From: Pavona decussata
Lineage: Eukaryota
Direction: 5' to 3'
Length of the DNA: 64,000 nt
Assembly (NCBI GenBank): GCA_977016875.1
Contig: CDRNST010000034.1
Span: 806,001-870,000 of the forward strand
Shown here: positions 2,205 through 58,487 of the stretch, in pieces
Position numbering within the stretch: position 1 is the stretch's first letter
Layout of the letters: every line of letters begins with the position of its first letter
Position numbers and translations under genes: made by a program
The notes under the pieces: generated by a model
The model's input: only the letters and a program-made list of their open reading frames with translations
Told to the model about the DNA's origin: nothing
The model's database searches: none

Positions 2205-3530
2205 TTAAGGAAATTTTTAAAGCTGCTTTGATAACATTCAATTTGTAGTAATGTTTTCTGCTCTGTAGTCCAGAATGAATCTAAAAAAAGATAGCCATGT
2301 TCTCAAAGTGTAGTCAAATGTCTGTAATAGTAACATGATCTTCCTTTGAAACTTGAGTGCCCTGCAAATTTGTGGTTAAAAATGATCTCACAGTGCTTCA
2401 TGCTAGAGTAAACCCTGCATTGTATTGGTTATTTTCAGATCTAAGATGTCGTGAAGTGGCCAAATTACCCTGCAGCTGTTGTGTAATTAAAGGGAGGGTA
2501 CTGTGGCAAATGGTTAAAAACATAGTTTACTCCAGCAGTAACAAATAATTATCCAGTTGCAATTCAATCTAAGTATCCTGGGATACAAATGATGCAATTG
2601 GATTCCCACCAATAATATTGTTCCTGTTGGGAAATTACTGTTAGTAGATTTTATTTTTGTAAGGAAGAAATTTTCGGTGTTGTTACTCAACTGACTGTCA
2701 GGTGGCAAAACAGAGGGAGATTTAGTAATTTATTACCTCACTGTAATATTTAGTGTGTTTTCACCAGCGAGCACTGTATAGAACAATAAGCTATGACATT
2801 GCATTGGCTTGTACATAATTGTACATGGAATAAAAACATTTCCTACAATTTCGTTTTTGGTTACATTGTGTCTAGTGTGTGCTGTAGGTTATTCACGGGT
2901 GGGGTGATCCCTACTGAAACTGAAAGCTGACTAAGAGGTGTGAATGAAGTGTCCAAAAAGAAAAGCTTGCTGTTGTCATATTCCATTTGATGTCACATGG
3001 ACATCAGCTTGTTTTACTGCATCTACTTTTGGTTGGTCTTGCAATCTTAGTTATGTTGACCTCAAGATTTTGCTACATTGAATTTGCAGTGAATAAATTT
3101 TCTACAAACATCTTCAGTTGCATCAGAGCTTGAGCAGTCACCAATGGCAACAGAAGTGTCATTTAAAAAATGTTTTATGTTATTTGCATTACTTTGCAAT
3201 TATTCTGGATTGTTCAACCGTGCATGATGTTTCCAAATAATTATTCTCCAGGAACTGAACTGGTAGGTATGGCATTCAAATTTAGAGTGAAAATTTCAGA
3301 ATTTGCATTTGCCCATGTTCACTGACAAAACTTTTAATTTTCTTCATTTCACTTATAGACAGGCAAAAAGGTACCAGAACATGCCAATAATGCATGCGCA
3401 TTGTTACTGTTTTCTGGTAAATAAACTCTTTGGTTAATGATGTTGTTGTTGTTGCCTCCACCATTGTAGTGGCCAAGGGCCCTAATGTTTCCTGCAAAAA
3501 AACTGCTGACTCATCTCCATGGGGACATGG

Positions 3531-16672: not shown

Positions 16673-17724
16673 ATGGCTCATGGTGGGCTTAGAGCTGTTC
16701 GTGAGGCCGTAATTTTTGCAAATGCCAAAGAGATTATTGATGATGAAGATTTTGTTCTCTTGTACGATGCTTATGTATCAAAACCGGTTTTTCCATATTG
16801 GAAGTTTAACAAGTTTGATCCAAACTGGAGTGATACAGAGTGCTGAACAGAGTTGAGATTTGATAAAGACGACTGAGAGTTGCTATCAGATTGTCTTCAG
16901 ATTCCAGCACAATTTAGATGCCAACAGTGAACTGTGTGTCATGGAAAGGAGGCACTATACATTTTGTTGAAGAGATTAGCCTATCCATGTCGATACACAG
17001 ATATGGTACCTCGCTTTGGATGTAATCCAAGTCAGCTGTGTTTGATATTTAATGAAGTTGTGGATTACATTTATACCACACATTGCCACCATCTTCAGTC
17101 CTGGGGCCAACCATTCCTCCAGGCGGCTCAGCTGTTTACAGTCAAGGAGCACCCCTCAGCAATTGCTTTGGGTTTGTTCACAGCGCAGTATGTGGCATTG
17201 CACGACCAGAACACAATCAATGTGTTATGTACAATAGGCATAAGCATGTCCATTCGGTGAAATTTCAAAGTGTGGTCATCCCAAATGGCCTCATAGCAAA
17301 TTTAAGTGGCTTATTTGAGGGTAAACGTCATGACAGTACAATGCTGTATGAATCGGGTCTACTGATTGACTTGCGCCGTGTTGCAGTTTACAATGGGGAG
17401 CCCCTTTGTATTTATGGTGACCTGGCTTACCCATTGGGAATTCACCTGCAAGGCCCATACAGAAATCCAAATACGCCAGAAAAAGCTTTATATAATGAAG
17501 CAATGAGGGGAGTGAGATTTGCAGTGGAGTGGCTTTTCGGTAATATAACCAAATATTTCAAGTTCATCGACTTCAAGAGACAAATGAAACTAAATCTGAG
17601 TGCAGTAGGCAAAATGTATATTGTTTGTGGTTTACTGCAGAATGCCCACACTTGCCTCTATGGCAATCTTACGTCAAGCAAGTTTGACCTTCAACCTCCA
17701 TTTCTTGAGGAATTTTTTTGGTAA
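16673..17724 (+). pseudogene. PIF/Harbinger DDE transposase pseudogene
   Basis: Motifs ELRF, LLKRLAYPCRYTDMVPRFG, YNRHKHVHSVKFQSVVIPNGLI, GKRHDS, IYGDLAYP, VEWLFG; several in-frame TGA stops, a frameshift near 17130, and first catalytic DG changed to HS. Confidence 0.92.
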
Positions 17725-19743
17725 TTATAAAATGGTTGTCAGGGCATAGTCAGACATTTTTTGAGTCGTTAAACCAGAGAAAGTGGTGCTGTGGTATTTT
17801 GTATTAGCACGAAAGACCATTTTTCTAGGGGGGATATGGGACATGTTTTAGAACACATTGTTGGGCCAACATTGAAATTTTTTTCATATTTCATGTTGTG
17901 AGTTTGTTGTGTTAAACAGACAAACTAAACAGTAGCAGACTCTTGCCATTACTAACCTAAAAAAAATCCCCAAATATTCCTTAAAGGCTGGCTACACCCC
18001 TGGTTGTGATGCAGAAGCAAATCCAGGATTTATGAAAGCAAGATCATAGTTGACACTATTTTACACCCTTCAATGGGTATTTGTTTTATCATTATTTTTT
18101 GTTAGGATTTATGTGATGGCTGTTCACGCAATCCACTCCTTCCAAATCTATCCCTACATTGTGTTCTTCCAAAAATATCAATAACCCTCAACCCTGCCCC
18201 CACTCCTGTGGAAATTATTTTTTTTGCCCCTCCACATCAGAATTTGATATTACCTGTTTTGTGGTGATGCAAATTAATCGCTGTTGCTGTACAGCAATGT
18301 ATGTGAATATTTCATGAGTTGCATAGTATTTTCCTGAGCCTTGCAACAAGTGAAATCATTTGCAAGTTTTTCCCTTTTTGAGTGGAATAATAAATTTTAA
18401 TTGAATTATCCTTTAACTCTTCCTAGTATATATACCAGTATGCACATGTGTTGCTTGTTTGCTTTTTATTTCTTAAATGGTAGGGTTTTCCTCTTTTTTC
18501 ACCTGTTGTAACACCTCCACCTTTTCTTTCAACCACTCCTTTGCTTCTCTGCCTGTTCTTCTTCTTTTAGTTGTCGTCTTTTCTGCCTCCTGTTCATCAT
18601 CGTTCCTTTTCCTTGTTTCTCCGAATCTATCGCTATTGCCTGTTTTTTCTCATTTGCCATTGCTTCTTTCTTTGCCTCACTCTGGTCATCTGCTCTTTTA
18701 TCACTTTCCTCTCCCAAAGTCACCAACTCCTCCACCAACCTCTCCAACTCACTCTGCTTTTCATCACCCCCACCACTTTCCTTTAATTCCTTTCAGAATT
18801 TTGATTTCACCAAGGCTGCTGCCTAAGAAAAATTTTAGGGAGCCCTTCGGGCTCCTAAAGTTTAAAGTTAGGAGCCCGAGCCACATTGTTAGGAGCCCAG
18901 TTTGAAATCCATGTATTGTTTTTCCAAGATCATTACATAGGTTATAGAGGTTCTTGCACACTTTAATAAGAATTCGCCGGGCCTAATAAATAACACGTAA
19001 ACAAGAATTAACCGAATTATTTACTTTCATTTATTAATTTATTCAATTAACTTCCACATCTGTTGTGTTCAATGTGACCTAGAAGAGCCTTCAAAGAATT
19101 TTCTAAAATGTAACAATTAAACTGCTTCTTACCTTTCTTATACACATTCATGAGCCGGAAAAATATTTGAGGGGCTTAATTTGCGTGTAAAAGGAATTTT
19201 CACAATTTTCACAATAAAAGAATAACATAACAGTAGGTAATTTCAACTCAGAATTATTTACTTGACTTTCACATTTGTTCAGTAACAGTTGTGTTCCACA
19301 TGACAACTTAACTAGTCTTCCAAAAACTTTCTAAAGTAGACCAATCCTCTCCTTGCCTTTTTTATACATGAACAGGAAAAACAGAACAGAACATCAAGTG
19401 CCTTATGTAAACCTTAGCCTGGATGGATCTCATTAAATGAAGTGCTAAACATTTGAGGAATCATTTAAATTGAATAACATTTTCCTATCTGATTCTGTGC
19501 TATAAAAGAATTTTATGTCAATGTAACTACATTGTAAATTCAAAAGATCATTTTTTTAAGTCTTATAAGTTCTCCAAAACAGCTCGGAGTTGTCCAAAAC
19601 AGCTCCATTTTAGAAGAGCTTAATTAGCCCCTCAAATAGTACTGTATTTTACTCAAGGAAAAACTCCCAATTTTGGGTCCAAAACAGATCCTTTGAATTC
19701 ACAGTGTAGTTTACAATTAAATCACAGCATTGAGCAATGTTCA

Positions 19744-22700
19744 TCAGTCTTTTGGTTTTGTCCCCTTAAGAGAACTCCAGGTTCTAGCCTCTGGATGTTT
19801 GTCCACCCAGTTCTCTCGTCGGGCTCTGACACTGTTTTCTCGCCAATGCTTGACTGCATTGGCAAGGTGCCCAGATTGAGCGAAGGCCTTGACTCTCTCT
19901 GATTTGTTCAGGCTGTGGTACTTAACTGAGATACGCAAGTTGTTGTCCAGTGTCCTAGTTGCAAGACTTGAACGCTGAATAGTTTTAGTGCGGTTCATGG
20001 AGCTGAAACCTCGCTCACAAGCTGCGGTGGACAAAGGCCAGGTGAACACAATCTCGGCAATCAAAAGGAAGTTAGGAAATTCTTCTTGTTTAGAAAACAA
20101 CACAGAGTAAATGTCAGGTGTTGTCTTGTGCTTCATTAGACTCACAAGGCTCTTAACTCCCTGCCACTCACTACTGACAGACTCAGCTTTAAAACCAGCT
20201 TTTTGCAACTGCTCTTGGTACCTGTTAGCGATTACACAGAGCTGATCACAACCATAAGACGCTAACTCTTCAGGATCTGTAGGCCACGTGTCTGGATCTA
20301 AAACTGAAGAAGCCTTTACAACTGGGTCGTTAAAGAGGTAATGGAATCGCTCTCCCATGCTCTGTCCAATTTCATCCAAAACAGACTTTCTGATCTTCTC
20401 AAATTGTTCAATATCATTGTCTTCCCTTTTGATCTCAATTTCTCTGAACACACTGCCATCCCCTGCTTCTTTCAAAAACGCCTCAAGTCTTGGACCATTT
20501 AACGACTTCATATTAAGACACTGTAATTCAAATTTTCGAACTGCTGCCGCTGCGGTTGTAACTGTAAGAAACTCAGCTTGAAAAACCTTACTTAAATGAG
20601 CTGCTTCCTCCGCAATGTCCCACAGAAAACTGGTAAAGAGCAACCCTCTGAATGAGGTTAAGAACTTGACCGAAAATGATGCTCGCCCCTGTCTACCACT
20701 TGATCCTACACGCATCTCTCTTGTGTTCTGGCAATGCATCATGAGAGTTTTATATCCCCGAAACAGTACCTGGAGTGCGGTTTGAAGATGTGGCAACCAT
20801 CTAGCTCCAAACACATTAGTAGGCTTAGAGATCTGGTTATCTAGTGCTTCAGCTAACTCTCTTAATTCCCTGAGGGCCTTGGCGCTGTAGTGATATTCCT
20901 GGTATAAACTGCGAAGGACATCACGTACTTTCACAAAATCTGGGTATTTTTCTAGGCACTTGACAACTGCCAATTCAAGCTTGTGTGCTCCGCACCAGAA
21001 TCCCATAAATTCTCTATTTTCTTGCCTCAATAAACCAACCACTCCGTTCTTCTCACCTGTCATTGCCGCACAGCCATCAGTTCCCAGGCCTGTAATTTTC
21101 TCCTTCCAGGTGACTGAATTCATGTTGGTTACTCTTTGGAAACAGGAATCAACCGCATCTAAATAACCTCTTCCAGTTCCAGCCTTAGGTTCTTCGATTC
21201 CAAGATATGCAGTGACCGGTCTTCCAACTGACTTTTCCAAGTAGCGCACATACATAATGGCTTCCTCAATGACACCATGATCTGTACTTCCATCAATCAT
21301 TAGGGAGAAAAAGTTACATTCCTTCAATTTGTCTGCGAGATCCTCCTTCATAACAGAGCTTATGTGCTCAATGAACTCAGTACATGCAGATCGTGTTAAG
21401 TAAGTTTCACCCAGCTCCACCCCATTTAACTTTTGAAGCGCACAGAGACTTTCATAGTCATCTAATGGCCGTTCTAATGCTGAAATGTAGAAGGCTGTTT
21501 TAAATTTCTTCTCCATTTTTTCGTCTTCTTTTTCGTATAACTGCTTACAGCACTTGTACATTTCAGTTTTTTTCGGATCATTTATGGCTTTGTCCGCAGC
21601 AATACATTTTTTATGGTTCTGGCTTGTTTCATGTTTTTTTAATGTCCCGTTTTTGAAGTTGCTTGACCCACTTCTCTTAGCTATTTCACTGTCCTTTGAT
21701 GCTAAAGAAGGGTGCTTCGAGCAAACACCACAGTACATTGATTTCACTGCTGTTCCAACAGGTTGTGAATTTGGGTAGGGTGTGTTAGTAATGAATGGCT
21801 GCATTGTGCCTTTTCTTACAAGGTTTATACGCAACCAAGAATGGGCTTGAAGCCACTTCCACTGAAATGACCTTGTCCGTTTTTGTTCATATTCCTTACG
21901 TTTGTCCATAGCATTAGCGTGATTTTCCCTTGTCCTATCCGATTCATCCTTTCCATCTTCTTCTATCTTCCTATTCACCTCAATCTTCCTTTTATCATCC
22001 ATCGTCGTTGCACTCTTTACCTTTCTTTCACCCTCCATGTTCTTTTCTGCAGCCATTTTTCTTGCATCCATCTTCCCCTGATCATCCTTCATTTTCCTCT
22101 CATCCTCCATTTTTCTCTCATCTTCCATATCTGTTTCGTCCTGCATCTTAAATTCATCTGTCATCTTCGTTTCATCCTGCATCTTCAATTCCTTTTCCAT
22201 CTTCATGTCATCCTGAATCTTTAATTCTTCCTCCACCAGCATTTTTTCCTTCATCTTTATTTTGTCCTCTGTCTTCTTTTCTGTCTTCCCATCATCCCCC
22301 ATTTTCATTCTTTTATTGTTTATGCCTGCTTCATTTCTCTTTTTCTTTTTACATTCTGTTGGAAACCAAAAGTCTTCCAAACTAAACGACCTTTTCGGGG
22401 GGGATGCTTTTTTAGTGGACTGGTCAGCAACTTTGCGGTAGTCTTTAGCAGTTTTGACTGCATGATCGGCATATTCCTTTTTAAAAAGGGGGACAAAGTG
22501 GTTAGGAACATAAATAGCATTTGGGCGGCTGTCTAATCCACCATCCCTTGACCACAGAATATGAAAGCAATCATTATTGGAAAACACGTCTGGCCTGTTA
22601 ATACGTGGTTTCACTAAGCCATGTAAGAGGGGGCGAATAGCTTCTGCACAACTTGGATAGATTGTAAAGACAGGCCTGGAAATCACTGTGGAAAGTGCCA

Positions 22701-24304
22701 TGATGTGCATCAGCGACGACCATTCACCTAGCTGACATCCCCCAATTGCCTCACTCTGGATAGCAGACTCACGGTTGCCACTGTGCTCCCACTCTGCTAT
22801 TCCATTTTCTTTCAGTGCGAGCGTGAAAACGGTGACTTCTCCAAAGGGACACCCACATTGAAGAGCTTCCCGGAATCGCGGATGGTTTCCATAGTAGGCA
22901 GTATTTTCAAACAGCTCAATGGCTGTCAGAATACGAAGACAAGTAGAGTATTCTGTTGTACCCACAAGGGCCAGAGAAATGGCGTGGTACAGGCAATTTC
23001 CATCCCCAGCGACTTCATGAGCAATAAGGCCAGTTGGTGCATCACACGGAATAAGGGACTGTGCCAGTTGGTCTTGTTTTAGCTTATCAGATCTCGGGAA
23101 GGACTGGTTAAGGTTTAATTTTCGCGAATATTTGTCCCTTAACTTGCAACACAAATCTTGGTTATTGCTAATCAGGGCTTCTTTCAAAGTTTTTAAGTCA
23201 GCAACCTGAAATATAAAGAAAACCGGCCCACTCTGTGAACTGTTCAAAACTTGTTATATTTTATTTAGGACCTTGGCCTCAATGAGGCTAGACCAGTTAT
23301 ACACAGTGTAGCGTTACTATAAAGATATCAAGTGGCATTTCATTTTAAAATATCTTATATCTGTCACTAAAGGAATAAAGATTCCCGCGGCCAAACCCCG
23401 AAAGATTTTGTATTTGTAAGCGAATAAAAATATAGCCCAATTACAAGTCAGTATCAGAAGAAAACAATTGATAACCGAAGTACCGTATTTATTCACTTAT
23501 AAGACGCACCTTTGTTTACGAAAATTTGTGCTTGCTCGATAAAAATTTTCTCAAAACTCGGGGTGCGTCTTATAACCGAGTATTTTCCCGCAACAAAATT
23601 TAACTTTGCCAAATTTCCTTATAATTGATGTTCAACTAAGATGAGAATGAATAAACAAGACATTCATCGTTGCATGGTCATCTTGAAGGTAAATTCCTGG
23701 TTTGGTTATGGAAAAGAGAGATTCTCCATCTGAGCCGTCAGAACTGGTTACCTAGCACGTGATCAAAATCTGCCCCGATCAAATTTCCTTCCACGACAAA
23801 AATAGCCGTGTCACGAAAATGATATTTGTTACATTTCAAGCGCTACTGTCTTAAACTTTCTGCACTTTTCTGTGAGCATGTTCCAGAACCAAACTCAACA
23901 TCAGTGTATCGAAGCTGTAGAAACTGTACGCGAAAAGAAGCCGTTTTTATTATAAGTGAAATATCAAGCTTACAGTATCTTTGATCTCAAAACAAACGCG
24001 GTTCAAATTTCATTAGTCAAAGAAAATTTGCATGAATTTGCGAGGCAATCACAGACAGCTACCTAGCTGATCTGCTATTTCGTTTAGAAGGTCAAGAATG
24101 TCAAGTTGTCACTACGGATTAAATAAAACCGCATTGAATATAGGTCAAATGAAGGCACAGCATCTTCGGTTGTGTTTTAAAAGCGGGAAATATATTTTAT
24201 TGTTTTGAAAGAGACAGTTTCCAAATCGTTATCTATATTAATATAAATGTTCACATACGGAGTCGTAAGAAATAAACATTGCTTACCTGTTGCGAGAATT
24301 CCAT
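19744..24304 (-). CDS. hAT transposase (ZNF862-like) with N-terminal OTU/vertnin-like domain; join(24287-24304, 19744-23205), ~1159 aa
   Basis: Exon 1 ATG GAA TTC TCG CAA CAG|GTAAGC splices in phase 0 to TTTCAG|GTT GCT GAC. OTU-like GDGNCLYHAISLAL...PNHFVP; zinc finger MYCGVC...HETSQNH; catalytic FSLMIDGSTD, GTDGCAAM, CGAHKLEL, ARWL, STAACERGFS; no stops. Confidence 0.9.
21950..22265 (-). repeat. Coding 18-bp minisatellite (hexapeptide KM[EQ]D[ED]x) inside the transposase
   Basis: KIQDDM KMEKEL KMQDET KMTDEF KMQDET DMEDER KMEDER KMKDDQ... Confidence 0.8.
23483..23600. mobile_element. pogo-type TIR remnant in the transposase intron
   Basis: TA|CCGTATTTATTCACTTATAAGACGCACC with internal inverted GGTGCGTCTTATAA; matching far end not found. 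Confidence 0.55.
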
Positions 24305-24330
24305 TGTAGTCACTGGGCTTAAGACAAATT

Positions 24331-24420
24331 GCTGAAACCTTTGTCGATTTTAGCGAGAAAAGAAGAACCTTTGCCGATTTTAGCGGGAAAAGCAGAACCT
24401 TTGCCGATTTTAGCGGGAAA
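24331..24420. repeat. 3 x 30-bp tandem repeat just upstream of the transposase ATG
   Basis: Unit core AACCTTTG(T/C)CGATTTTAGCG(A/G)GAAA. Confidence 0.85.
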
Positions 24421-25038
24421 GGGCGCTAAGCACGTGCAGCAAGGCAGAAATACAACCAACACAAAGTTGATCATTACTTTAATTTCTTTATTCAAGGTAA
24501 AGGCATCACATTACAAATATGAAATATCATACTGCGTTCTCTGGCGTGTTGTTTTTTAAAGTCTCTTGAAAATGCTGATACGTTGCAAACTGGTACATGA
24601 AATCGAACATCAAGCACGTCCAGTCGATAGCACGCAAGATAGCTTCCCATTCTCGCCACAAAAAAGTTATCAAATCGACGATAACCCAAGCAAACGATGA
24701 ACTGCACGAATGTCAACATAGGCAACAAACAGCCCATAATTTTGCTATTCCATATTTGGAAGTCAAATCTCAGACCCAGTCTTCAACTGCCATCCGGACT
24801 CGGAAACGATGGCTTCGTTCGTTTCGACAAAGCTTCACAGTTGAACACGTTAGGTTTACATAATTTACGGTTTACTTGTGGAAATTTTATACTGCCTAAT
24901 CGCATCATCGCTAACCATATCAACAGTTCCACTGTTTAAAGTCCTACTCCAGCTAAAGGAATATAATGTACAAGGAGGTTAAGTCTAATGCCGTGTGTTA
25001 AGTCAGGCGCCCGCGCGGGCTCCTTGTACCGAAATTTG

Positions 25039-25851
25039 AGGGCCGTTTACACGACCGAAAAAATTGGAACGGCTCGGATAAAAAGACGAACGGCTCCGAC
25101 AAAATTTGACGTGTAAACAGTACTTGAACCGTTCCAGTCTTATCCGTTCCGTTCCTAAAAAGGTCCATAGGCGGCTATGGACCCCTTTCGGAACGGAACC
25201 GATAAAAAACGGTTCCGTACCCACATTTTTGTTTTCTTTTCAACGTGTAAACGCTCGCCCTTTTTTCGGCACCGTTCTGTTACGTTTTTTCTGTGCCCGT
25301 TGTACTCCATGTCAGTTGTTTAGCATACCATTGATCGTTAGAGCAAGGGCTGTATGCAAGATCAAACCAAGCGCTTGTTCTTGGAATTTGCCACAAGCTC
25401 CGTGCGACTGTGAAGTGCGATACAAGGGCTGTTAATAGGAGAACCGTAAGCCTTGTTTTTCTCCTAATTCGGTACATTCTCTCAGAAGCATTTCTTTGAA
25501 GAATCACTCGCCCTCTCAAACGTGAATTTCGTGTTCTCTTCTTCAGAAGAAACCAGAAAAGTGCTTGTAAATTTATGATAGTCGGAGATACGCACAGTGT
25601 ACTGTATGTGTAAGCACATAGGAACAACTAATCGAAGCAGTTTTGTTTAATTATTGCGAGCTCTATCGTTACCGGTCTCGAAGAAAACAACATGTAAACG
25701 TTTAGTACCCGTTCCAAGGGGCTCTCAAGTACCGTGCCTTTTTCTGTTAGGTACATTACAGAATTTGTACGTGTAAACGGAAGATTTCGTCTGGAACCGG
25801 TACTTGTTTCTAACCGAGCCGTTCCTTCTCTTTTAACGTGTAAACGGGCCT
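25039..25851. mobile_element. Harbinger-type MITE nested in the hAT subterminal region
   Basis: TIR AGG(G/C)CCGTTTACACG; 3-bp TSD TTG at 25036-38 and 25852-54; internal GGAACGG/CCGTTCC repeats. Confidence 0.8.
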
Positions 25852-27589
25852 TTGGTCGCCCATGCTCTTACCTTGGGCGCCCGTTAGGCAGCAGCCTTGT
25901 TCACTCTTTTAGCTAAAATGTTAAATCTATCCCAAATGGATCTAGCCAAAACACAAAATGACTGTGTTGTATTCGCGTTCAGGCTTACAGCAACAGCTTG
26001 CCATGCTTTCCCGCGTTCTAAACTCCCCAACTTCCAATGGAACATACCCTCCGCAGCTATGGTGGTAAGCATGATCACATCTTTTTGTTCCATATCATGA
26101 CAGATCTAAGATAGAAAAGGTTTAAATTATTTTATAATTATTATAAAAGATATTTTTAATTATTACATAAATTATTATGAGTTAGTTATAGCAAAGGTTC
26201 AAGATTGAAAGGCTCACATAAATCCCCAGGGCACACGATTTCATTGCTGTAAATTAAAATTGTAAATCTGTATTGATATTCTGTATAAAAAATTTCAGGT
26301 GTCTAAAATCTTATACAAACAAAATAGTTGTATTTTTACACCTGATTTAATGATAAATGAAAAAATGTATCAAGAAAACAGAACTCTGCCTCTTATGTGT
26401 ATAAAATATCGATAAACAACATTTATACTAAATATATATGACAACATAAGAACAATATAAGGTGATGGGCGGTTTAAGGAAAAGAAAGAAGTCAAATTAC
26501 AAACAAGGCAACCAATAGACCGCGACTCTGGCTCAGTGTGAACAATGTTCACCGAAAGCAAGTTGCTCAGAGCGACTGAATGACTATTATTCGTCTGACG
26601 CAAAGATGACATGTCAATTAAAAGGCTTGACCAAAAGGAGCTTAAAAAATAAATAAAAGCAAAATGACCTATCTTGCAGGCCAGCAAGAAAGCAAATGCG
26701 ATGCAAACCATTGGGTGCCCCCCAGCAGAGAGCTCAAAGGTTGCCCCTGAGCCGTGACGAGAGGCAACGGCTGACCTGCATTGAGCTGACTTTAACCTTG
26801 CCTAAATTACATTTAGCCACATTTAAACTTACAGAACTTGTCAAAAGTTAGTTACCACCCTTGCAATTGAGTAGCATGCATCAAGAATTGCATAGCGTGT
26901 GAAGAACTAAAAACTAAGTATTGTTGCGTAAAGTTCTTGTGTAATGTTGATGAACTTTTATAAGGTGCTAAACAACTAATGCAAGTGCGACGAGATCAAG
27001 TAACATTGATTTCCAGGGAAAACCTGCTGAAAACAGATAACTGTTTAATACAATGGCATTGTGTTTACCAGATGTAACAGAAGGTGGTTAGCTCCTGGTT
27101 TGGTGCAGGTGGTGTCTACACTTACTTTCAGGGAATTCCTTTGGCTAGCACATGTATTGGGCAAACTTTGTTGCAGAATATTTCCAGCTTTACTGACCAT
27201 GATTAACTATGATACAATTCATGGATCAAACCAAGAACACAACTTCATGTACATTCCATGTGCTTACTTTAATAATCATCCTGAATTGCCCATGTCCGTG
27301 ACAATATACATATAGTGTGGGTAGGGAGGGTAGGTTGGCAACATGTGTATACTACATTCCTCCCTTCTTTGAAATACATGTTGGTTTGAACAAAACCTCA
27401 TAATAACAAAATGAAATCTAAAAAAACTTAAAATGCATGCAGATGTCTTTGAAAATCCTTCTTTATAGCATGGATAATTAGATTTACTCAAAGAAAAGGT
27501 ATAGACAAAAATCTAACAAACAATAAACAATTCAGTCCAGACAAAGTCCAATACATGTCCTTTCCTGGGACCAGCCTAATACAGCCAGG

Positions 27590-44469: not shown

Positions 44470-46690
44470 AGGCAGCGTGAGGGGTAGTGTTGTTTCCTCT
44501 AGCTTGTCCAGGCTGTTGATCCACTTGTAAGGAAAGAAACCTTTGGTCTGCTCACACTTGTATGCTTTTAGGAACTGGTTGTAGGTGAACCCGGGAGCGA
44601 GATAGTTTGTGATGTCCAAAACTTGAGGTATTCAGTCTTGAGGCACATGTGGTTGCCGTTTCTTTTTTACAGTAAACTTGACTGGCTGTGTCTCAATGAG
44701 GTAGGGAAATAAAAATTCTTTCACAGCGTTGAGATCATACTTGCCAGAATTGAAGCCCAAGACTGGCAGTTCTTGAATGTAGCCATTCAGTTTTTCTTCT
44801 AATTGACAAAGGACTTTGTTGTTACTGGTGTGTTGCTCTCCGATTAACATATCTTCACAATCTGGCATTTCTTGTCTTCTCCCCTGGTCCAACTCTACGT
44901 TTAATCTTCTATAAAACGACGGATCGTTTTCACTCACTTCGTCATCTAAAAAGACGCGATCTTCTTCGTTCTCTGGCTCGATTTCTTCCTCATCCTCCTC
45001 ATCATCGCTCGCCATTAAATCAATGTCTCTACTTTCATCTTCGCTCTCTTCTTCACTATTTTCATCTTTGCTAGACTCCTCATTTCCTTCTTGCATATCC
45101 ACTAGCATTTGCAATAACTGATCTTCGTGCGTCTCACCACGCCTAGGTACAGATGCTTGGACAAGCGCTTCAAACACGGGTGCGTACTGTTGGCGTAGCA
45201 GAGAAGAACTTTTCGTGCTTATGGCGACCATGCACTCAACAAATTTTCTCATCGGCTCTTCGGAGTTGCCCTCCAGGACAAAACATTTCAGCTCTTGGTA
45301 ACCAAGCATGTTACTGCATACATTGAAACTCAAGCGCACACGAGATGACTGCCAGGTTAACTTGTCTGTGTTTTTCTCTTGGTTAGCATTTTCCTTGCCA
45401 AAGTAACATTCAAAGTTGAAGGTGGCGTGGTAAGGGAAGTAGCGGAATTCTTCCGGAACATTGATCCCTTCCTCTTCTAATTCTTCAAAGATAGTCGTCG
45501 GGACATGGTAGGCTCCGCCTGGGTACTTAAAGGGAACTTTCCCATCACAGTTCTTCTCGTGTTGTCTCAAGTTATGCACTCGTTTCCAGTGCTTGCCACA
45601 GTGAGAACATTGAAATGATTTACTGTAGCGGGCCAGGTCTTTGATGTAAGAAAAGTGGTTCTCATAGAGGTTGAGGAATGGAGTGCTTGGATAGTGGCGA
45701 TGCGAGCGGCGGAGGAGCGTAGCAGCAATGTCAGGTTCGTCTTCATTGTCTTCTGTTTCGTCTTCCCCGTGTGTTTGGGTGGGTGCAAGACTGTACACTT
45801 GAATGTTGACTTCAAACAACTTTTCTAGATCGTCTAATTCACTTATCTTGACACCATGAAATTTCTTTTTTCCCAACCCAGCATCTTGGTATTGTTGGTA
45901 ATAGTATTGCGTGTCTCTCTCTAAATTCTTTGTGTGGCATCCGTTATGGAGGGTCAGACATCTGAAGAAACAGAGGTTATCTTCATAGGGTTTGCCTCTT
46001 CGGATATCGCAATCGAGCGGGATAATTCCACCGTTCTCTACAATGTGATGTGGGAGATATTTCCCTCGGCCGAGGGGATGATCGCGAATCTTTGTGATAA
46101 ACCAGGTGACATTCGTAATGAGATCGACAACTCATTTACTGTTTGGTTTCTGCTGGCGTATCCACTCCAGGAAATCGATGTTGTTTACTTGTCCATACAA
46201 GCGCTCTAAATCATCTTGATTGGAGACCAGGAAAGGCTCTTCTAAGACCAGGTTGTTATTGGCAGACGGGTTGTGATATTGGAGAGCCGCAGTCTCTGTA
46301 TTGCGCAGAATGAAACCAAACGAAAAGTTCACTTTGAAGACTGTCGGCTGGTCGGCAAAGATCCGGCTCAATTGTTCGCGGAGGTTGGCAGGACTGAGGG
46401 TTAAGAGGCGAAAATTATACCAGTCTCGTAGGCGGTTGTGTCAGCTAAAGCGGGTACGAATTTGCGGCCAGTGCTGTCTGTACATTTGGGCAATGTTTTC
46501 TTCACTACTGGCAACAAGGTTGGATTGAATAAGAACTAGATCAGGTTGCCAACTTGAAGTAGTGATGGTTTTTTTAGTTGTGGGGGCTGGTTCTGAAGTG
46601 GTACTCGTACTTGCTTGGTCCGACCTCTTAGATCTTTTTGCGGACGGAGCATCTGATGTTTTAAATTACTTTAAAGAGAGCACACTCGCG
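44470..46690 (-). mobile_element. Polinton/Maverick-like protein-primed DNA polymerase B fragment (N-terminal region and exonuclease), frameshifted and 3'-truncated
   Basis: FKVNFSFGFILRN, DNLCFFRCL, LEKLFEVNIQVYSL, FLNLYENHFSYIKD, YFPYHATFNFEC, LPVLGFNSGKYDLN, KFLDITNYLAPG, KGFFPYKW. Confidence 0.82.
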
Positions 46691-55662: not shown

Positions 55663-58487
55663 AATGGTACCCTCAAATATAAAAAAATTGGTATTGAGTT
55701 TAAACAAATAGTCTTCCATGTCATGTAATTATACTGACTGAGAGAAATTGTTTGATACAAATTATGACGTCATTGGTTACCATGGGAACCATGCCACGCC
55801 CCTAAAACCCCTGTTTTAAGCCTCCACTTTAACAGTAATATCTCTACAACAAATGAACATTTCAACTTAAAATTTTCAATATATGCTCTACATTCATAGA
55901 CCTGTGATATAAACCTAAGATTCCACCAAACAAGTTTTTGTTTGTTTTAATTTGAAGGTGCAAATCTATGGAACCAATTTTATAATGACACACCGTAAAT
56001 CGCTGCCCAAAAAATATTATTCAAATACAAGATCATGGTTTGTATTTAGCTTCATATCATAACTACAGTATTGATCAAAAGTTACAGCAAAATTGAATGG
56101 CTCATGTTAATTAGTTTTCCAAGGAGATATGTTGAGCCATTTTCAATATGGTCAAAATCATTTGCTTGAGTGCTTGAGAAAAAGAGACTTAAAGTTCAAG
56201 TATGGTTTTCACAAGCAACAACAAAACTGTCAGCTGCTAGAGTTAACTAAAACTGTCCTGTAGCATAGGTAACTCCCTCTGATTGTTTATTTTTGTCCTC
56301 TTTTCTCTTTTTCTTTCCTCTCAGAACCTTTCTTTGCTTCTTGTTTTGCTCTTCACCTTTGTATAATGCATTATACGCATGTTCTGCATCTAGCATTTTG
56401 CATCCTTCCTCAGTGTACTTCCCACTAGGAATTCCTAGGGCTCCATACAATTGCAAAACAGTTTGAGCACCAACATTAAAATGGGCTACAGCATCAAAAA
56501 GGCCAAATTTTAACACATCTCTTCCAACAAACACTTCTTTGGGTACTCGCTGCCAGACCAGACCATTCAAACGTTCATTTCTGTTTTGCGTTTTTCCATG
56601 CAAACACTTTTGGAGGAGTCCATCATCACTAAGTCTTTGATAAACAGGCTTGACCTTTGCTATGACTTCAAGAGGAAGCCCAGGACCATGCTTATAATTT
56701 GCTCTGTCACGGTGGTACCCACACCAGCTATTGGCTCCAATAGGACAGTAATCATGGAGATGTCGGGACTCGCTTGATGCACAATGAAAAAGACTTGCTA
56801 GGACTGCTTTTTTCATTCCTTGCAAGTCTCCCACATTGCTTCTTATTGCAATACCATAGTAGTTTTGTAGTTTATCTATCATAGAATCTGTCAGTTTACC
56901 TTTTCCGCTCAACCCTGGGGTGTCCTTCTTCAGCTTCCTTAGTGCTGTTCCCACTCTCTTTTGAACATGCCCAATGCATTCCTGTTTGGCCACTTCAATA
57001 CCAGCTGCAGCGTATACATCTTTAACTTTGTTATAACTTTTACTTTCACCATCTCCATACAGTTCCGAATACCTGAGTCTGTGAGTCTCCGCTGATCGCC
57101 TAAAGATTCGCTCAGTTCCTTCAGGTTCCATGGCTGGTGCAGATCCCTTATAGTTTGCAGGACAGTTATTACTGTGATCTGCCCAAAATAACTGGTACTC
57201 TACACTGTTCTTGTCAAGGTGCGAATGCAGTTCACATCGCTTACAACATTTAGACATAGCTTCAGCATCTAGAACTTTACCCGTGTCGATGGAGATGACA
57301 GCAACACATCCATTATTAGACGAGAAGCCACGCTTTTGCCATGTGCCATCACATGACACAGGACAATTCACCATATCATTCTCTTCAGCATTATTTGCAT
57401 TTCTAATCTCAGCAGCAGCATCTGCCATACTCTTTTTTGCAATAGCCTTAATGTTTTTCTTGATTGTATTGCTACTCTTTTGGAAGGGTTTTGCTCCTGA
57501 AGGTGGTGGCATGTTCATTAGAGTGCAAAATTTCTTTGCACCACTGTGCCCTTTTCCCAAAGACCTCATGGTATAAACAAGTCGTCTATTTACCTCAAAG
57601 CTCTTTGTTTGCTTCTTCGATGAGAAGAATTCGTTCTTCCAGCCACAGTTTTCGCAGAAAATCCTTAGACATGAGGCACAGCCACTTCGATGGAAGGGAT
57701 TCTCGTTTAGCGTCAAAGTGAGGAATCCACAATCAGCACATCGTAGCGATGAAATCACACTGCTAAGTATCTCCATATCTACCAATCTGTACCCGGTAAC
57801 GTAACTGGAGCCCTTTTCGTCGCCTTTGTTGGATTCTCCTATCTTTATTTCCTCGTCAGCAGGCTTTGGCAAGACCTTTTCAGTAGACATTGAAGCAATA
57901 TCATCCTCAAACTCGACGAAGCTACTCGAGGCAAGTGGTTCTCCGCTTACATCACATGTATCACTTTGTGTCGACTTGGGGCGCGAGTTTGAGAATTGAT
58001 TGCCACAGAATCTTCTTTTTGGACGTCTTAAAGAGCGTTGCTTTGGCATTACAGAATATTTAAACGATTTAGAGTGAAAAGTTCCCAAGATGAACAGATT
58101 TTTAACCTTCTCCAACAGATGATAACAACCGAAAGCAAATGAAAGCAGACTTTCGGTTCCAGGCTATCCTGGCGCAAGCTTACTTTTCTTCATGTAAGTT
58201 GACACGAGGTGTCCTTATCAACAAGATATCGCTTCCAGCCGAAAAAATCGGAGTTTCACACATGTTTTCGGTCGTTATTGTCAGTAAACAAGCTGTAAAC
58301 AGAACGGTTGCCCATGGCAACCAAAGAGTGAACCTTGGAAACGTCTTGGAAAAATTGTAAAATCTTCTATTCTTTGCAAAAATAACACTTTCTCAGCACT
58401 CCAGAATAATCAAAGATTTGAAACATCTCCAAAACTTTTTTTCCGAAATTTCACAAAAATCGTTGAAAATTAGGGTACCATTCCACC
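55663..58487 (-). mobile_element. Near-complete Kolobok-like DNA transposon in an intron of the BEN gene
   Basis: One terminus reads TTAA|GGTGGAATGGTACCC on minus (58473-58491); the other keeps only AATGGTACCC (55663-72); GTTACCATGGGAACC, GTTGCCCATGGCAACC and TGACGTCA motifs. Confidence 0.7.
56247..58049 (-). CDS. Kolobok-type ('Mutator-like' domain) DDE transposase, uninterrupted ORF; likely start MPKQRSLRR
   Basis: CADC...CENC zinc ribbon, SCDGTWQKRG, YGDGESKSY, ECIGHVQKRVG, LQNYYGIAIR, HDYCP..SWC, TQNRNERLN, terminal YATGQF. Confidence 0.85.
   Translation of the reverse strand: MPKQRSLRRPKRRFCGNQFSNSRPKSTQSDTCDVSGEPLASSSFVEFEDDIASMSTEKVLPKPADEEIKIGESNKGDEKGSSYVTGYRLVDMEILSSVISSLRCADCGFLTLTLNENPFHRSGCASCLRIFCENCGWKNEFFSSKKQTKSFEVNRRLVYTMRSLGKGHSGAKKFCTLMNMPPPSGAKPFQKSSNTIKKNIKAIAKKSMADAAAEIRNANNAEENDMVNCPVSCDGTWQKRGFSSNNGCVAVISIDTGKVLDAEAMSKCCKRCELHSHLDKNSVEYQLFWADHSNNCPANYKGSAPAMEPEGTERIFRRSAETHRLRYSELYGDGESKSYNKVKDVYAAAGIEVAKQECIGHVQKRVGTALRKLKKDTPGLSGKGKLTDSMIDKLQNYYGIAIRSNVGDLQGMKKAVLASLFHCASSESRHLHDYCPIGANSWCGYHRDRANYKHGPGLPLEVIAKVKPVYQRLSDDGLLQKCLHGKTQNRNERLNGLVWQRVPKEVFVGRDVLKFGLFDAVAHFNVGAQTVLQLYGALGIPSGKYTEEGCKMLDAEHAYNALYKGEEQNKKQRKVLRGKKKRKEDKNKQSEGVTYATGQF

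Follow-up and report, generated by a model that had tools for sequence, protein, structure and literature searches.

A coral hAT5 transposon predicted to encode an A20-like OTU protease domain fused to a Hermes-like transposase

Proteases of ubiquitin and SUMO recur in unrelated transposons, with Ulp1 in Mutator and Ginger1, OTU in Ginger1 and Helitron-like elements and VTD in Helentrons; to our knowledge, a role for such protease domains in transposition has never been shown. Ginger1 transposases, many of them from Hydra, have an OTU or Ulp1 domain at the C-terminus (Bao, Kapitonov and Jurka, 2010, PMC2836005), OTU domains are found in Helitron-like elements (PMC4067079, PMC11417382), and one survey of fungal DNA transposons lists OTU as a standard accessory domain (PMC5751038). 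The VTD deubiquitinase class of Helentrons has been shown to be active, and transposon OTU domains, according to the same source, have never been assayed for activity (PMC9741609). Within the hAT superfamily, the hAT5 group (Kapitonov and Jurka, 2007; Putnam et al., 2007) has 5-bp target-site duplications (TSDs) and was first found in a cnidarian, according to the passages devoted to it in PMC9004415 and PMC12730594; these passages, Repbase entries aside, make no mention of an OTU domain in hAT5 transposases. Here we analyzed a stretch of 64,000 nucleotides from Pavona decussata (GCA_977016875.1, contig CDRNST010000034.1, positions 806,001 to 870,000; hereafter the window, which contains no N) and describe on its minus strand a hAT element of 7089 bp (18811-25899) in which an OTU domain and a transposase lie in one frame.

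The reading that we favor, with moderate confidence, is that this is an autonomous hAT5 cut-and-paste transposon encoding a single fusion protein of an A20-like OTU domain and a transposase, and that the OTU part is an active deubiquitinase that aids the spread of the element. The protein would begin with the A20-like OTU domain, followed by a basic stretch and a charged repeat linker, a C2H2 zinc finger, and a Hermes-like DDE transposase with its dimerization region. The OTU domain would enter the nucleus together with the transposase and strip ubiquitin or a ubiquitin-like tag either from the transposase itself or from host proteins at the site of excision or integration; as a result, the transposase would be shielded from degradation, or a ubiquitin-dependent host response would be blunted, and the element would spread. 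Ginger1 resembles this arrangement in that it joins a cut-and-paste DDE transposase and an OTU cysteine protease in one protein, is abundant in a cnidarian (Hydra) and suggests the same link to the ubiquitin pathway; it differs in belonging to a superfamily with a Gypsy-integrase-like DDE domain and 4-bp targets of the CCGG type, and in carrying the OTU domain at the C-terminus rather than at the N-terminus. Helitrons and Helentrons likewise have a papain-fold ubiquitin protease in their main open reading frame (ORF), but they are rolling-circle elements with a Rep/helicase in place of a DDE transposase; the activity shown for the VTD class is a precedent for such a function. The pairing of OTU domains with transposons is therefore known elsewhere; our literature search, which did not cover Repbase Reports, found no description of an OTU domain in any hAT element, and in hAT the pairing is apparently undescribed (Repbase aside). 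An earlier reading of this DNA by a model that saw only the letters and the ORFs (the sequence-only reading) likewise did not know it as a standard hAT feature.

That the N-terminal part has an OTU fold, as the sequence-only reading had proposed, is borne out by profile and by structure prediction (residue numbers here are those of exon 2, and all searches and models were made with exon 2 or parts of it). Scanned alone, residues 1-272 match the OTU cysteine protease family (Pfam PF02338, MEROPS C85-like) with 26.3 bits, above its cutoff of 23.3, whereas a scan of the whole ORF gives 23.1 bits, marginally below it; the same Pfam model is matched by 30 of 45 relatives. An AlphaFold (AF2) model of the domain has a predicted local distance difference test score (pLDDT) of 89.7 and a predicted TM-score (pTM) of 0.86, and its top 50 Foldseek matches in the PDB are all OTU enzymes (probability 0.92-1.00), including VCPIP1, A20 and Cezanne (leading), TRABID, OTUD3, OTUD5 and nairovirus OTUs. 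When a profile of the family was searched against the PDB, OTU deubiquitinases were the sole matches, with the NHFVPL loop aligned to the QHFVPL loop of A20, and a search of representative sequences with the OTU domain gave 1513 relatives at E <=1e-3. The best structural and profile matches are the A20-like OTUs (A20/TNFAIP3, Cezanne/OTUD7B, TRABID and VCPIP1). The Cys loop (GDGNCL) and the His loop (HFVPL) nearly coincide in A20 and the window domain, and in both an Asp lies upstream of the Cys (Asp45 here, Asp70 in A20). Unlike the A20 group, the window domain is fused to a transposase and has no A20-type zinc fingers, UBX or ankyrin modules, and its identity to the characterized deubiquitinases in the fold search is 16-21%.

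The two codons that the sequence-only reading had picked out as catalytic, Cys71 and His236, are where it placed them (Table 1), and all four motifs that it quoted are present. These residues are conserved among the family copies and far beyond: they form the sole invariant columns among 45 aligned relatives (23-68% identical to the window domain), and across 215 domain instances the Cys is kept in 143 of 144, the His in 157 of 157 and Asp45 in 116 of 122. In the AF2 model, C71 starts a helix (71-81) and H236 lies on a strand (236-242); the residue two positions past His236 is Val238, which is not acidic. With this Cys/His pair the OTU domain appears catalytically equipped. We infer that it is an active isopeptidase and, since its nearest relatives are deubiquitinases, most likely a deubiquitinase.

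It is unlikely, in our judgment, that the domain is functional without being a deubiquitinase, i.e., that it acts on SUMO, NEDD8 or another modifier, or that it is mainly a ubiquitin-binding or docking module. Ulp1/SUMO-type proteases do occupy the same position in other transposon superfamilies (PMC2836005), some OTU-fold proteins are inactive, e.g., vertnin (PMC10318531), and the low identity to characterized deubiquitinases given above would agree with such a role; however, every significant profile match is a ubiquitin-specific OTU, and pure binding would leave the Cys and His as sole invariant residues unexplained. The sequence-only reading had also raised the possibility of self-cleavage, in which the OTU domain would be a self-processing protease that cuts the linker and frees a transposase of conventional size. 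OTU-like proteases of some RNA viruses process viral polyproteins. Viral OTU proteins, including OTU-like domains inside viral replicase polyproteins, led a fold search against the viral models of BFVD, and the linker between the OTU and transposase halves is long, poorly conserved and probably disordered. Against this, the linker has no Gly-Gly or ubiquitin-tail-like motif (the only GG pairs, at residues 155 and 222, belong to the OTU fold itself), among solved structures the nearest relatives of the domain are cellular deubiquitinases of the A20 group and not viral processing proteases, and a conserved SFSLEDFWFP block after the OTU domain is not a known OTU cleavage site; self-cleavage, which finds no support in the sequence, is quite improbable.

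The second half of the predicted protein resembles Hermes, whose RNase H-like DDE catalytic domain has a large helical insertion. An AF2 model of residues 471-1153 (pLDDT 80) has Hermes as all of its top 12 Foldseek matches in the PDB (E 1.4e-9 to 4e-7; 545-608 aligned columns), after which no comparable match follows; phmmer with the hAT half against the PDB gave no Hermes match, and the fold search was needed to reveal the likeness. In alignment A2 (numbered from residue 471), D638, C738, H741, R802 and W803 are invariant and D710 is nearly so, and E1064 lies within an ERGFS motif; the Hermes-equivalent catalytic residues were assigned by motif, not by superposition. The complete hAT DDE core recognized by the sequence-only reading is thus in place (D, D, E, CxxH and W), as are its basic stretch, hexapeptide linker repeats and zinc finger. 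The finger is of the zf-C17orf113 type (Pfam PF25431; E 4e-7; 30.3 bits against a cutoff of 29.5), with its four ligands invariant in alignment A3, and precomputed Pfam matches in the transposase half include PF27073 and PF14291, with DUF4371 and FAM200-ZBED5_RNase-like among the family names.

At the ends of the element, the 16-mer that forms its terminal inverted repeats (TIRs) has just two matches in the window with up to 2 mismatches allowed, against a chance expectation of 0.01. Both TIRs and TSD had been called perfect. For the TIRs this is so (16 of 16 positions); for the TSD it holds for a pentamer, TTCAC, and not for the 8 bp, which are ruled out because the 8-bp flanks differ. Since a 5-bp TSD is the known hAT5 exception, the lack of an 8-bp duplication is no argument against the hAT superfamily; a hAT-type transposase with 5-bp duplications points to the hAT5 group, to which the window element can be assigned by its 5-bp TSD and short TIRs and with which it also shares a cnidarian host.

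The element is mobile and structurally complete, and the OTU domain is part of the mobile unit, as the sequence-only reading had it: the TIRs and TSD enclose the fusion, and the fusion recurs in at least five coral families. The product of the window ORF is identical to a protein on record, the 90% cluster of which includes NCBI entries of Porites lobata and Porites lutea, and the names of more distant relatives are those of Porites evermanni, Montipora and Acropora; such names point to a stony coral genome. Other contigs carry 1167-codon ORFs that match that of the window exactly or almost exactly. A commoner variant of the protein, 4 residues off (P0007), is encoded on 12 contigs, and in 8 of these the DNA is 99.74-99.77% identical to the window element. 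The sister copy on a 2-Mb contig (L001), 6290 bp long, could be read at both ends: it shares the TIRs and is flanked by GCTTG as a 5-bp duplication of its own. The 3' flanks of other contigs give two further insertion sites (CAAAT in L002; GTTCT in L003, L005 and L006). The family appears to have been very recently active in reef-building corals.

The 25-nt 5' terminus also occurs in JGI metagenomes, on at least 120 coral contigs (L014-L133) with at least 103 distinct flanks. Most of these contigs share only ~100 terminal bases with the autonomous element, so the matches are relatives or non-autonomous elements and not copies of the window element, and the OTU coding sequence is present in none of the at least 120 contigs. 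Related or non-autonomous elements thus seem to form a large population in coral metagenomes. Among the terminus-bearing contigs there was no convincing case of a short two-ended derivative, and an empty site, searched for in the JGI metagenomes, was not found.

The copies and flanks bear on the idea that the locus is a host gene, either a domesticated "ZNF862-like" transposase joined to a host OTU domain or, as a variant, a transposon carrying a captured host exon as a passenger. The NCBI name of the family, "zinc finger protein 862-like," would agree with it, as would the presence of the same OTU clade in bivalve proteins that are not hATs. The transposase half has the same Pfam signatures as the domesticated vertebrate hAT genes ZNF862, C17orf113, FAM200 and ZBED5 (zf-C17orf113, DUF4371, FAM200-ZBED5_RNase-like and the hAT dimerization region), but these are immobile host genes, unlike the window element, and P0208 (582 aa), the one ZNF862-like protein obtained from fish, lacks an OTU part. 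Perfect TIRs and TSD, ~99.75% identical copies at other sites (one with its own TSD), the many distinct flanks beside the same terminus in coral metagenomes, and the recurrence of the fusion in at least five families, with selection on both halves in three of them (unexpected for a passenger), leave such an origin with almost no likelihood.

The OTU-hAT fusion is shared by at least five diverged coral families. Full-length proteins with an OTU domain, a zinc finger and a hAT part are found in the window family and P0262; in P0002; in P0003 and P0018; in P0192, P0209 and P0210; in P0244, which UniRef names "OTU domain-containing protein"; and in P0227, and OTU-hAT fragments occur as well (e.g., P0028, P0151 and P0123). 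Across families with the fusion, identity falls to 53-54% for the hAT part and to 30-40% for the OTU part; for the related families at L009 and L010 it is 66-67% in the OTU part. In four families the elements end in TIRs of the CA(A/G)GGCT type and are flanked by 5-bp duplications, which in the related families are CATTG (L009), ATGTA (L013) and TTGTT (L012); the copy at L010 (3384-9016) has both TIRs and no matching 5-bp duplication (AAAGG vs CCTAC). Homologue searches with a word filter and at most 8000 scored candidates gave coral proteins and, besides these, just a few distant hATs, which does not bound the taxonomic range.

Nei-Gojobori comparisons of the window, L009 and L010 families gave dN/dS (nonsynonymous to synonymous substitution rate) ratios of 0.13-0.17 for the OTU core, 0.21-0.29 for the N-terminal helices, 0.11-0.39 for the linker and 0.10-0.11 for the zinc finger and hAT part, although dS is ~1, near saturation, and the ratios are therefore rough, a caution to be counted with the points against our reading below. 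The fusion is evidently old, with its OTU part apparently under purifying selection across diverged families, and the pattern in the OTU domain and the transposase is not the behavior of a passenger or a relic.

Some of the related copies have features of their own. The L010 copy lies within an LTR-retrotransposon-like region (LTR, long terminal repeat). At L009 (5001-8408) the frame is open, but five residues of the transposase (GLGTD), including its second catalytic Asp, are missing; the OTU Cys and His are intact. At L011 (1-4923), a more distant OTU-hAT gene (P0151) lies between inverted repeats of at least 630 bp, the offset self-matches of which suggest ~70-bp tandem units, quite unlike the 16-bp TIRs of the window family.

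Several points weigh against the reading of the element as a transposon with its own deubiquitinase, and some of them concern the gene model. The 1159-aa protein and the exon-1 splice are predictions, and the NCBI gene models of the family (988 and 854 aa) begin at an internal Met and lose the catalytic Cys; the models XP_073236444.1 and XP_073246460.1 (here P0005 and P0006, from Porites lutea) are named "zinc finger protein 862-like" and omit the Cys or the whole OTU domain. The minus-strand open frame 19744..23247 has 1167 codons counted from TTG and no ATG ahead of ORF residue 180, hence none before the OTU Cys, so that the OTU part could be translated only from an upstream start, by way of splicing. 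The predicted model has an ATG at 24304 and a GTAAGC donor and gives 6 + 1153 = 1159 aa; ATG, donor and acceptor all fit the spliced protein of about this size that the sequence-only reading had put forward. The 5' regions of the L009 and L010 families are nearly unalignable to that of the window element, except for an island with the ATG, five codons (MELSQQ, MAFSQQ) and GTAAGC, and both families have an AG acceptor in phase 0 just ahead of the conserved N-terminal helix; the putative exon-1 splice thus fits the ATG, donor and acceptors conserved in three families. Were the OTU part untranslated, the product would begin with MHIMALST... from the first ATG of the frame, which is where XP_073236444.1 starts, and the frame ahead of it would be a relic, in keeping with the missing upstream ATG and with the N-terminus left out of both NCBI models. 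The frame upstream of the internal Met is, however, open in three families at a dS of ~1, with dN/dS 0.13-0.29, the short ATG exon, donor and phase-0 acceptors are kept in all three, and Cys71 is invariant, which together make an untranslated OTU part very unlikely.

Further counterpoints lie in the OTU domain and in the window copy. The deubiquitinase role and its part in transposition are read from sequence and models; the resemblance to solved OTUs is modest by TM-score (0.36-0.46 on query length), OTU-fold enzymes may act on other ubiquitin-like tags or on polyproteins, and the choice of Asp45 as a possible third catalytic residue is a guess. As to the copy, the term "intact" used in the sequence-only reading holds for the ends, the duplications and the open frame and fails for two lesions near the 5' end. 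One is a nested 813-bp insertion that lies 47 bp inward from where the hAT5 copy begins on its 5' side (25036-25854 with its TTG duplications) and has no second copy within the window; because of it the window element measures 7089 bp, against 6290 bp for the L001 sister copy. The other is the loss of 17 bp from the 5' subterminal region (site 25874-25875), between two GGCGCCC repeats; the stretch is retained in L001, L009 and L010, and its loss could affect transposase binding. In addition, one of the 4 positions at which the window protein differs from P0007 is residue 520 in the zinc finger, which is Gly here and Glu in the sister copies and related families. With the nested insertion, the 17-bp deletion and the Glu-to-Gly change, the window copy itself may be immobile; its coding capacity is intact, yet it may be a poor transposition substrate.

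A hAT example adds an independent recruitment of such proteases in the best-understood eukaryotic cut-and-paste system (with Hermes structures and assays), and the near-identical copies with open frames make a Cys-to-Ala transposition test realistic. A stronger version of our reading, which we regard as possible but rather doubtful, is that deubiquitination is a required step of coral hAT5 transposition, without which the transposase would be degraded or the donor or target chromatin would be unusable. If that were true, ubiquitin-dependent restriction of DNA transposons would be a general host defense, at least three unrelated superfamilies (hAT5, Ginger1 and Helitron-like) would have independently recruited deubiquitinases as a countermeasure, and the coral copies, which are almost identical and apparently live, would offer a tractable system. 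Further, gene predictors mislabel these elements as host "zinc finger protein 862-like" genes and clip the catalytic Cys, which matters for coral annotation.

Members of the same OTU clade are fused to DUF7869 in Mytilus (P0042 and P0128), occur in Dreissena (P0023) as a tandem of three OTU domains alongside an LRAT domain, and lie C-terminally in proteins of 990-1520 aa (P0058, P0061, P0130 and P0154), in which a Pfam scan found no second domain beside the OTU. Joined to such varied partners, the domain is modular. A DUF7869 gene adjoins the OTU-hAT element in L012. The sequence-only reading had further suggested a bearing on the origin of vertnin-like genes. Vertnin (VRTN) is an inactive OTU-like human protein (PMC10318531); compared by description only, it resembles the window protein in having an OTU-like fold in a nuclear DNA-binding protein, and is reported without a catalytic site, whereas the window family keeps its site. 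No vertnin was identified among the 150 listed representative matches, no vertnin-named Pfam family matched at E <=1, and a literature search on a transposon origin of vertnin found nothing relevant.

Table 1. Features of the OTU-hAT element, in window coordinates.
Feature	Positions	Strand	Remarks
TSD TTCAC, 5 bp, 3' side in gene orientation	18806..18810	.	same pentamer at 25900-25904
3' TIR, 16 bp	18811..18826	-	16/16 complementary to 25884-25899
3' untranslated and subterminal region, with repeated GGAGCCC-type motifs near the end	18827..19743	-	direct reading; ~99.75% to sister copies
Exon 2, 1153 codons and stop (OTU, linker, zinc finger and hAT core in one frame)	19744..23205	-	ORF translation
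hAT transposase part, residues 471-1153	19747..21795	-	D638, D710, E1064, C738-x-x-H741, W803
hAT C-terminal dimerization region	19945..20115	-	Pfam PF05699, E 3.3e-7, 30.4 bits vs cutoff 21.4
C2H2 zinc finger (C492, C495, H525, H531), zf-C17orf113 type	21586..21744	-	
K/E/D/M-rich charged linker, 18-bp (hexapeptide) tandem repeats	22082..22232	-	Tandem Repeats Finder periods 18 and 36
Basic stretch, residues 286-301, putative nuclear localization signal	22303..22350	-	composition only
OTU-like cysteine protease domain, exon-2 residues 1-245 including two N-terminal helices	22471..23205	-	
Catalytic His236 codon CAC, NHFVPL loop	22498..22500	-	aligns with A20 His loop
Catalytic Cys71 codon TGC, GDGNCL loop	22993..22995	-	aligns with A20 Cys103
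Asp45, candidate third catalytic residue, upstream of Cys	23071..23073	-	Asp in 38/42
Predicted intron, GT...AG, phase 0	23206..24286	-	donor GTAAGC; pyrimidine-rich acceptor ...tttcag ending at 23206
Exon 1, predicted coding part, ATG and five codons	24287..24304	-	MEFSQQ; conservation island
Three 30-bp tandem repeats, 30-120 bp upstream of ATG	24336..24425	-	in sister copy, partly in related families
Nested non-autonomous insertion, 813 bp, 15-bp TIRs starting AGGGCC, 3-bp TSD TTG	25039..25851	.	absent from L001
5' TIR, 16 bp	25884..25899	-	identical 16-mer also ends related families at L009 and L010
TSD TTCAC, 5 bp, 5' side in gene orientation	25900..25904	.	same pentamer at 18806-18810

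The 30-bp tandem repeats upstream of the ATG are, at a guess, promoter or binding sites. A block of ~35 bp (CCAAATATGG ... ATTATGGGCT) lies farther upstream of exon 1 (window ~24740-24780, L001 ~3480-3520 and the corresponding stretches of L009 and L010). Three families retain it although their 5' regions have diverged in other respects, and it could be a promoter element or bind the transposase.

Other ORFs in the window include one of 414 aa at 44632-45876 (-) with a sub-threshold match to DNA_pol_phi (25.7 bits against a cutoff of 27.6), which is probably compositional, and one of 622 aa at 56247-58115 (-) that contains a Mutator-like transposase domain in its full length (Pfam PF20700, E 1e-85). 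An ORF of 213 aa at 17083-17724 (+), some 1 kb from the 3' end of the hAT5 element, matches the PIF/Harbinger-type DDE_Tnp_4 (E 1e-18), and a similar ORF also lies near the L001 copy.

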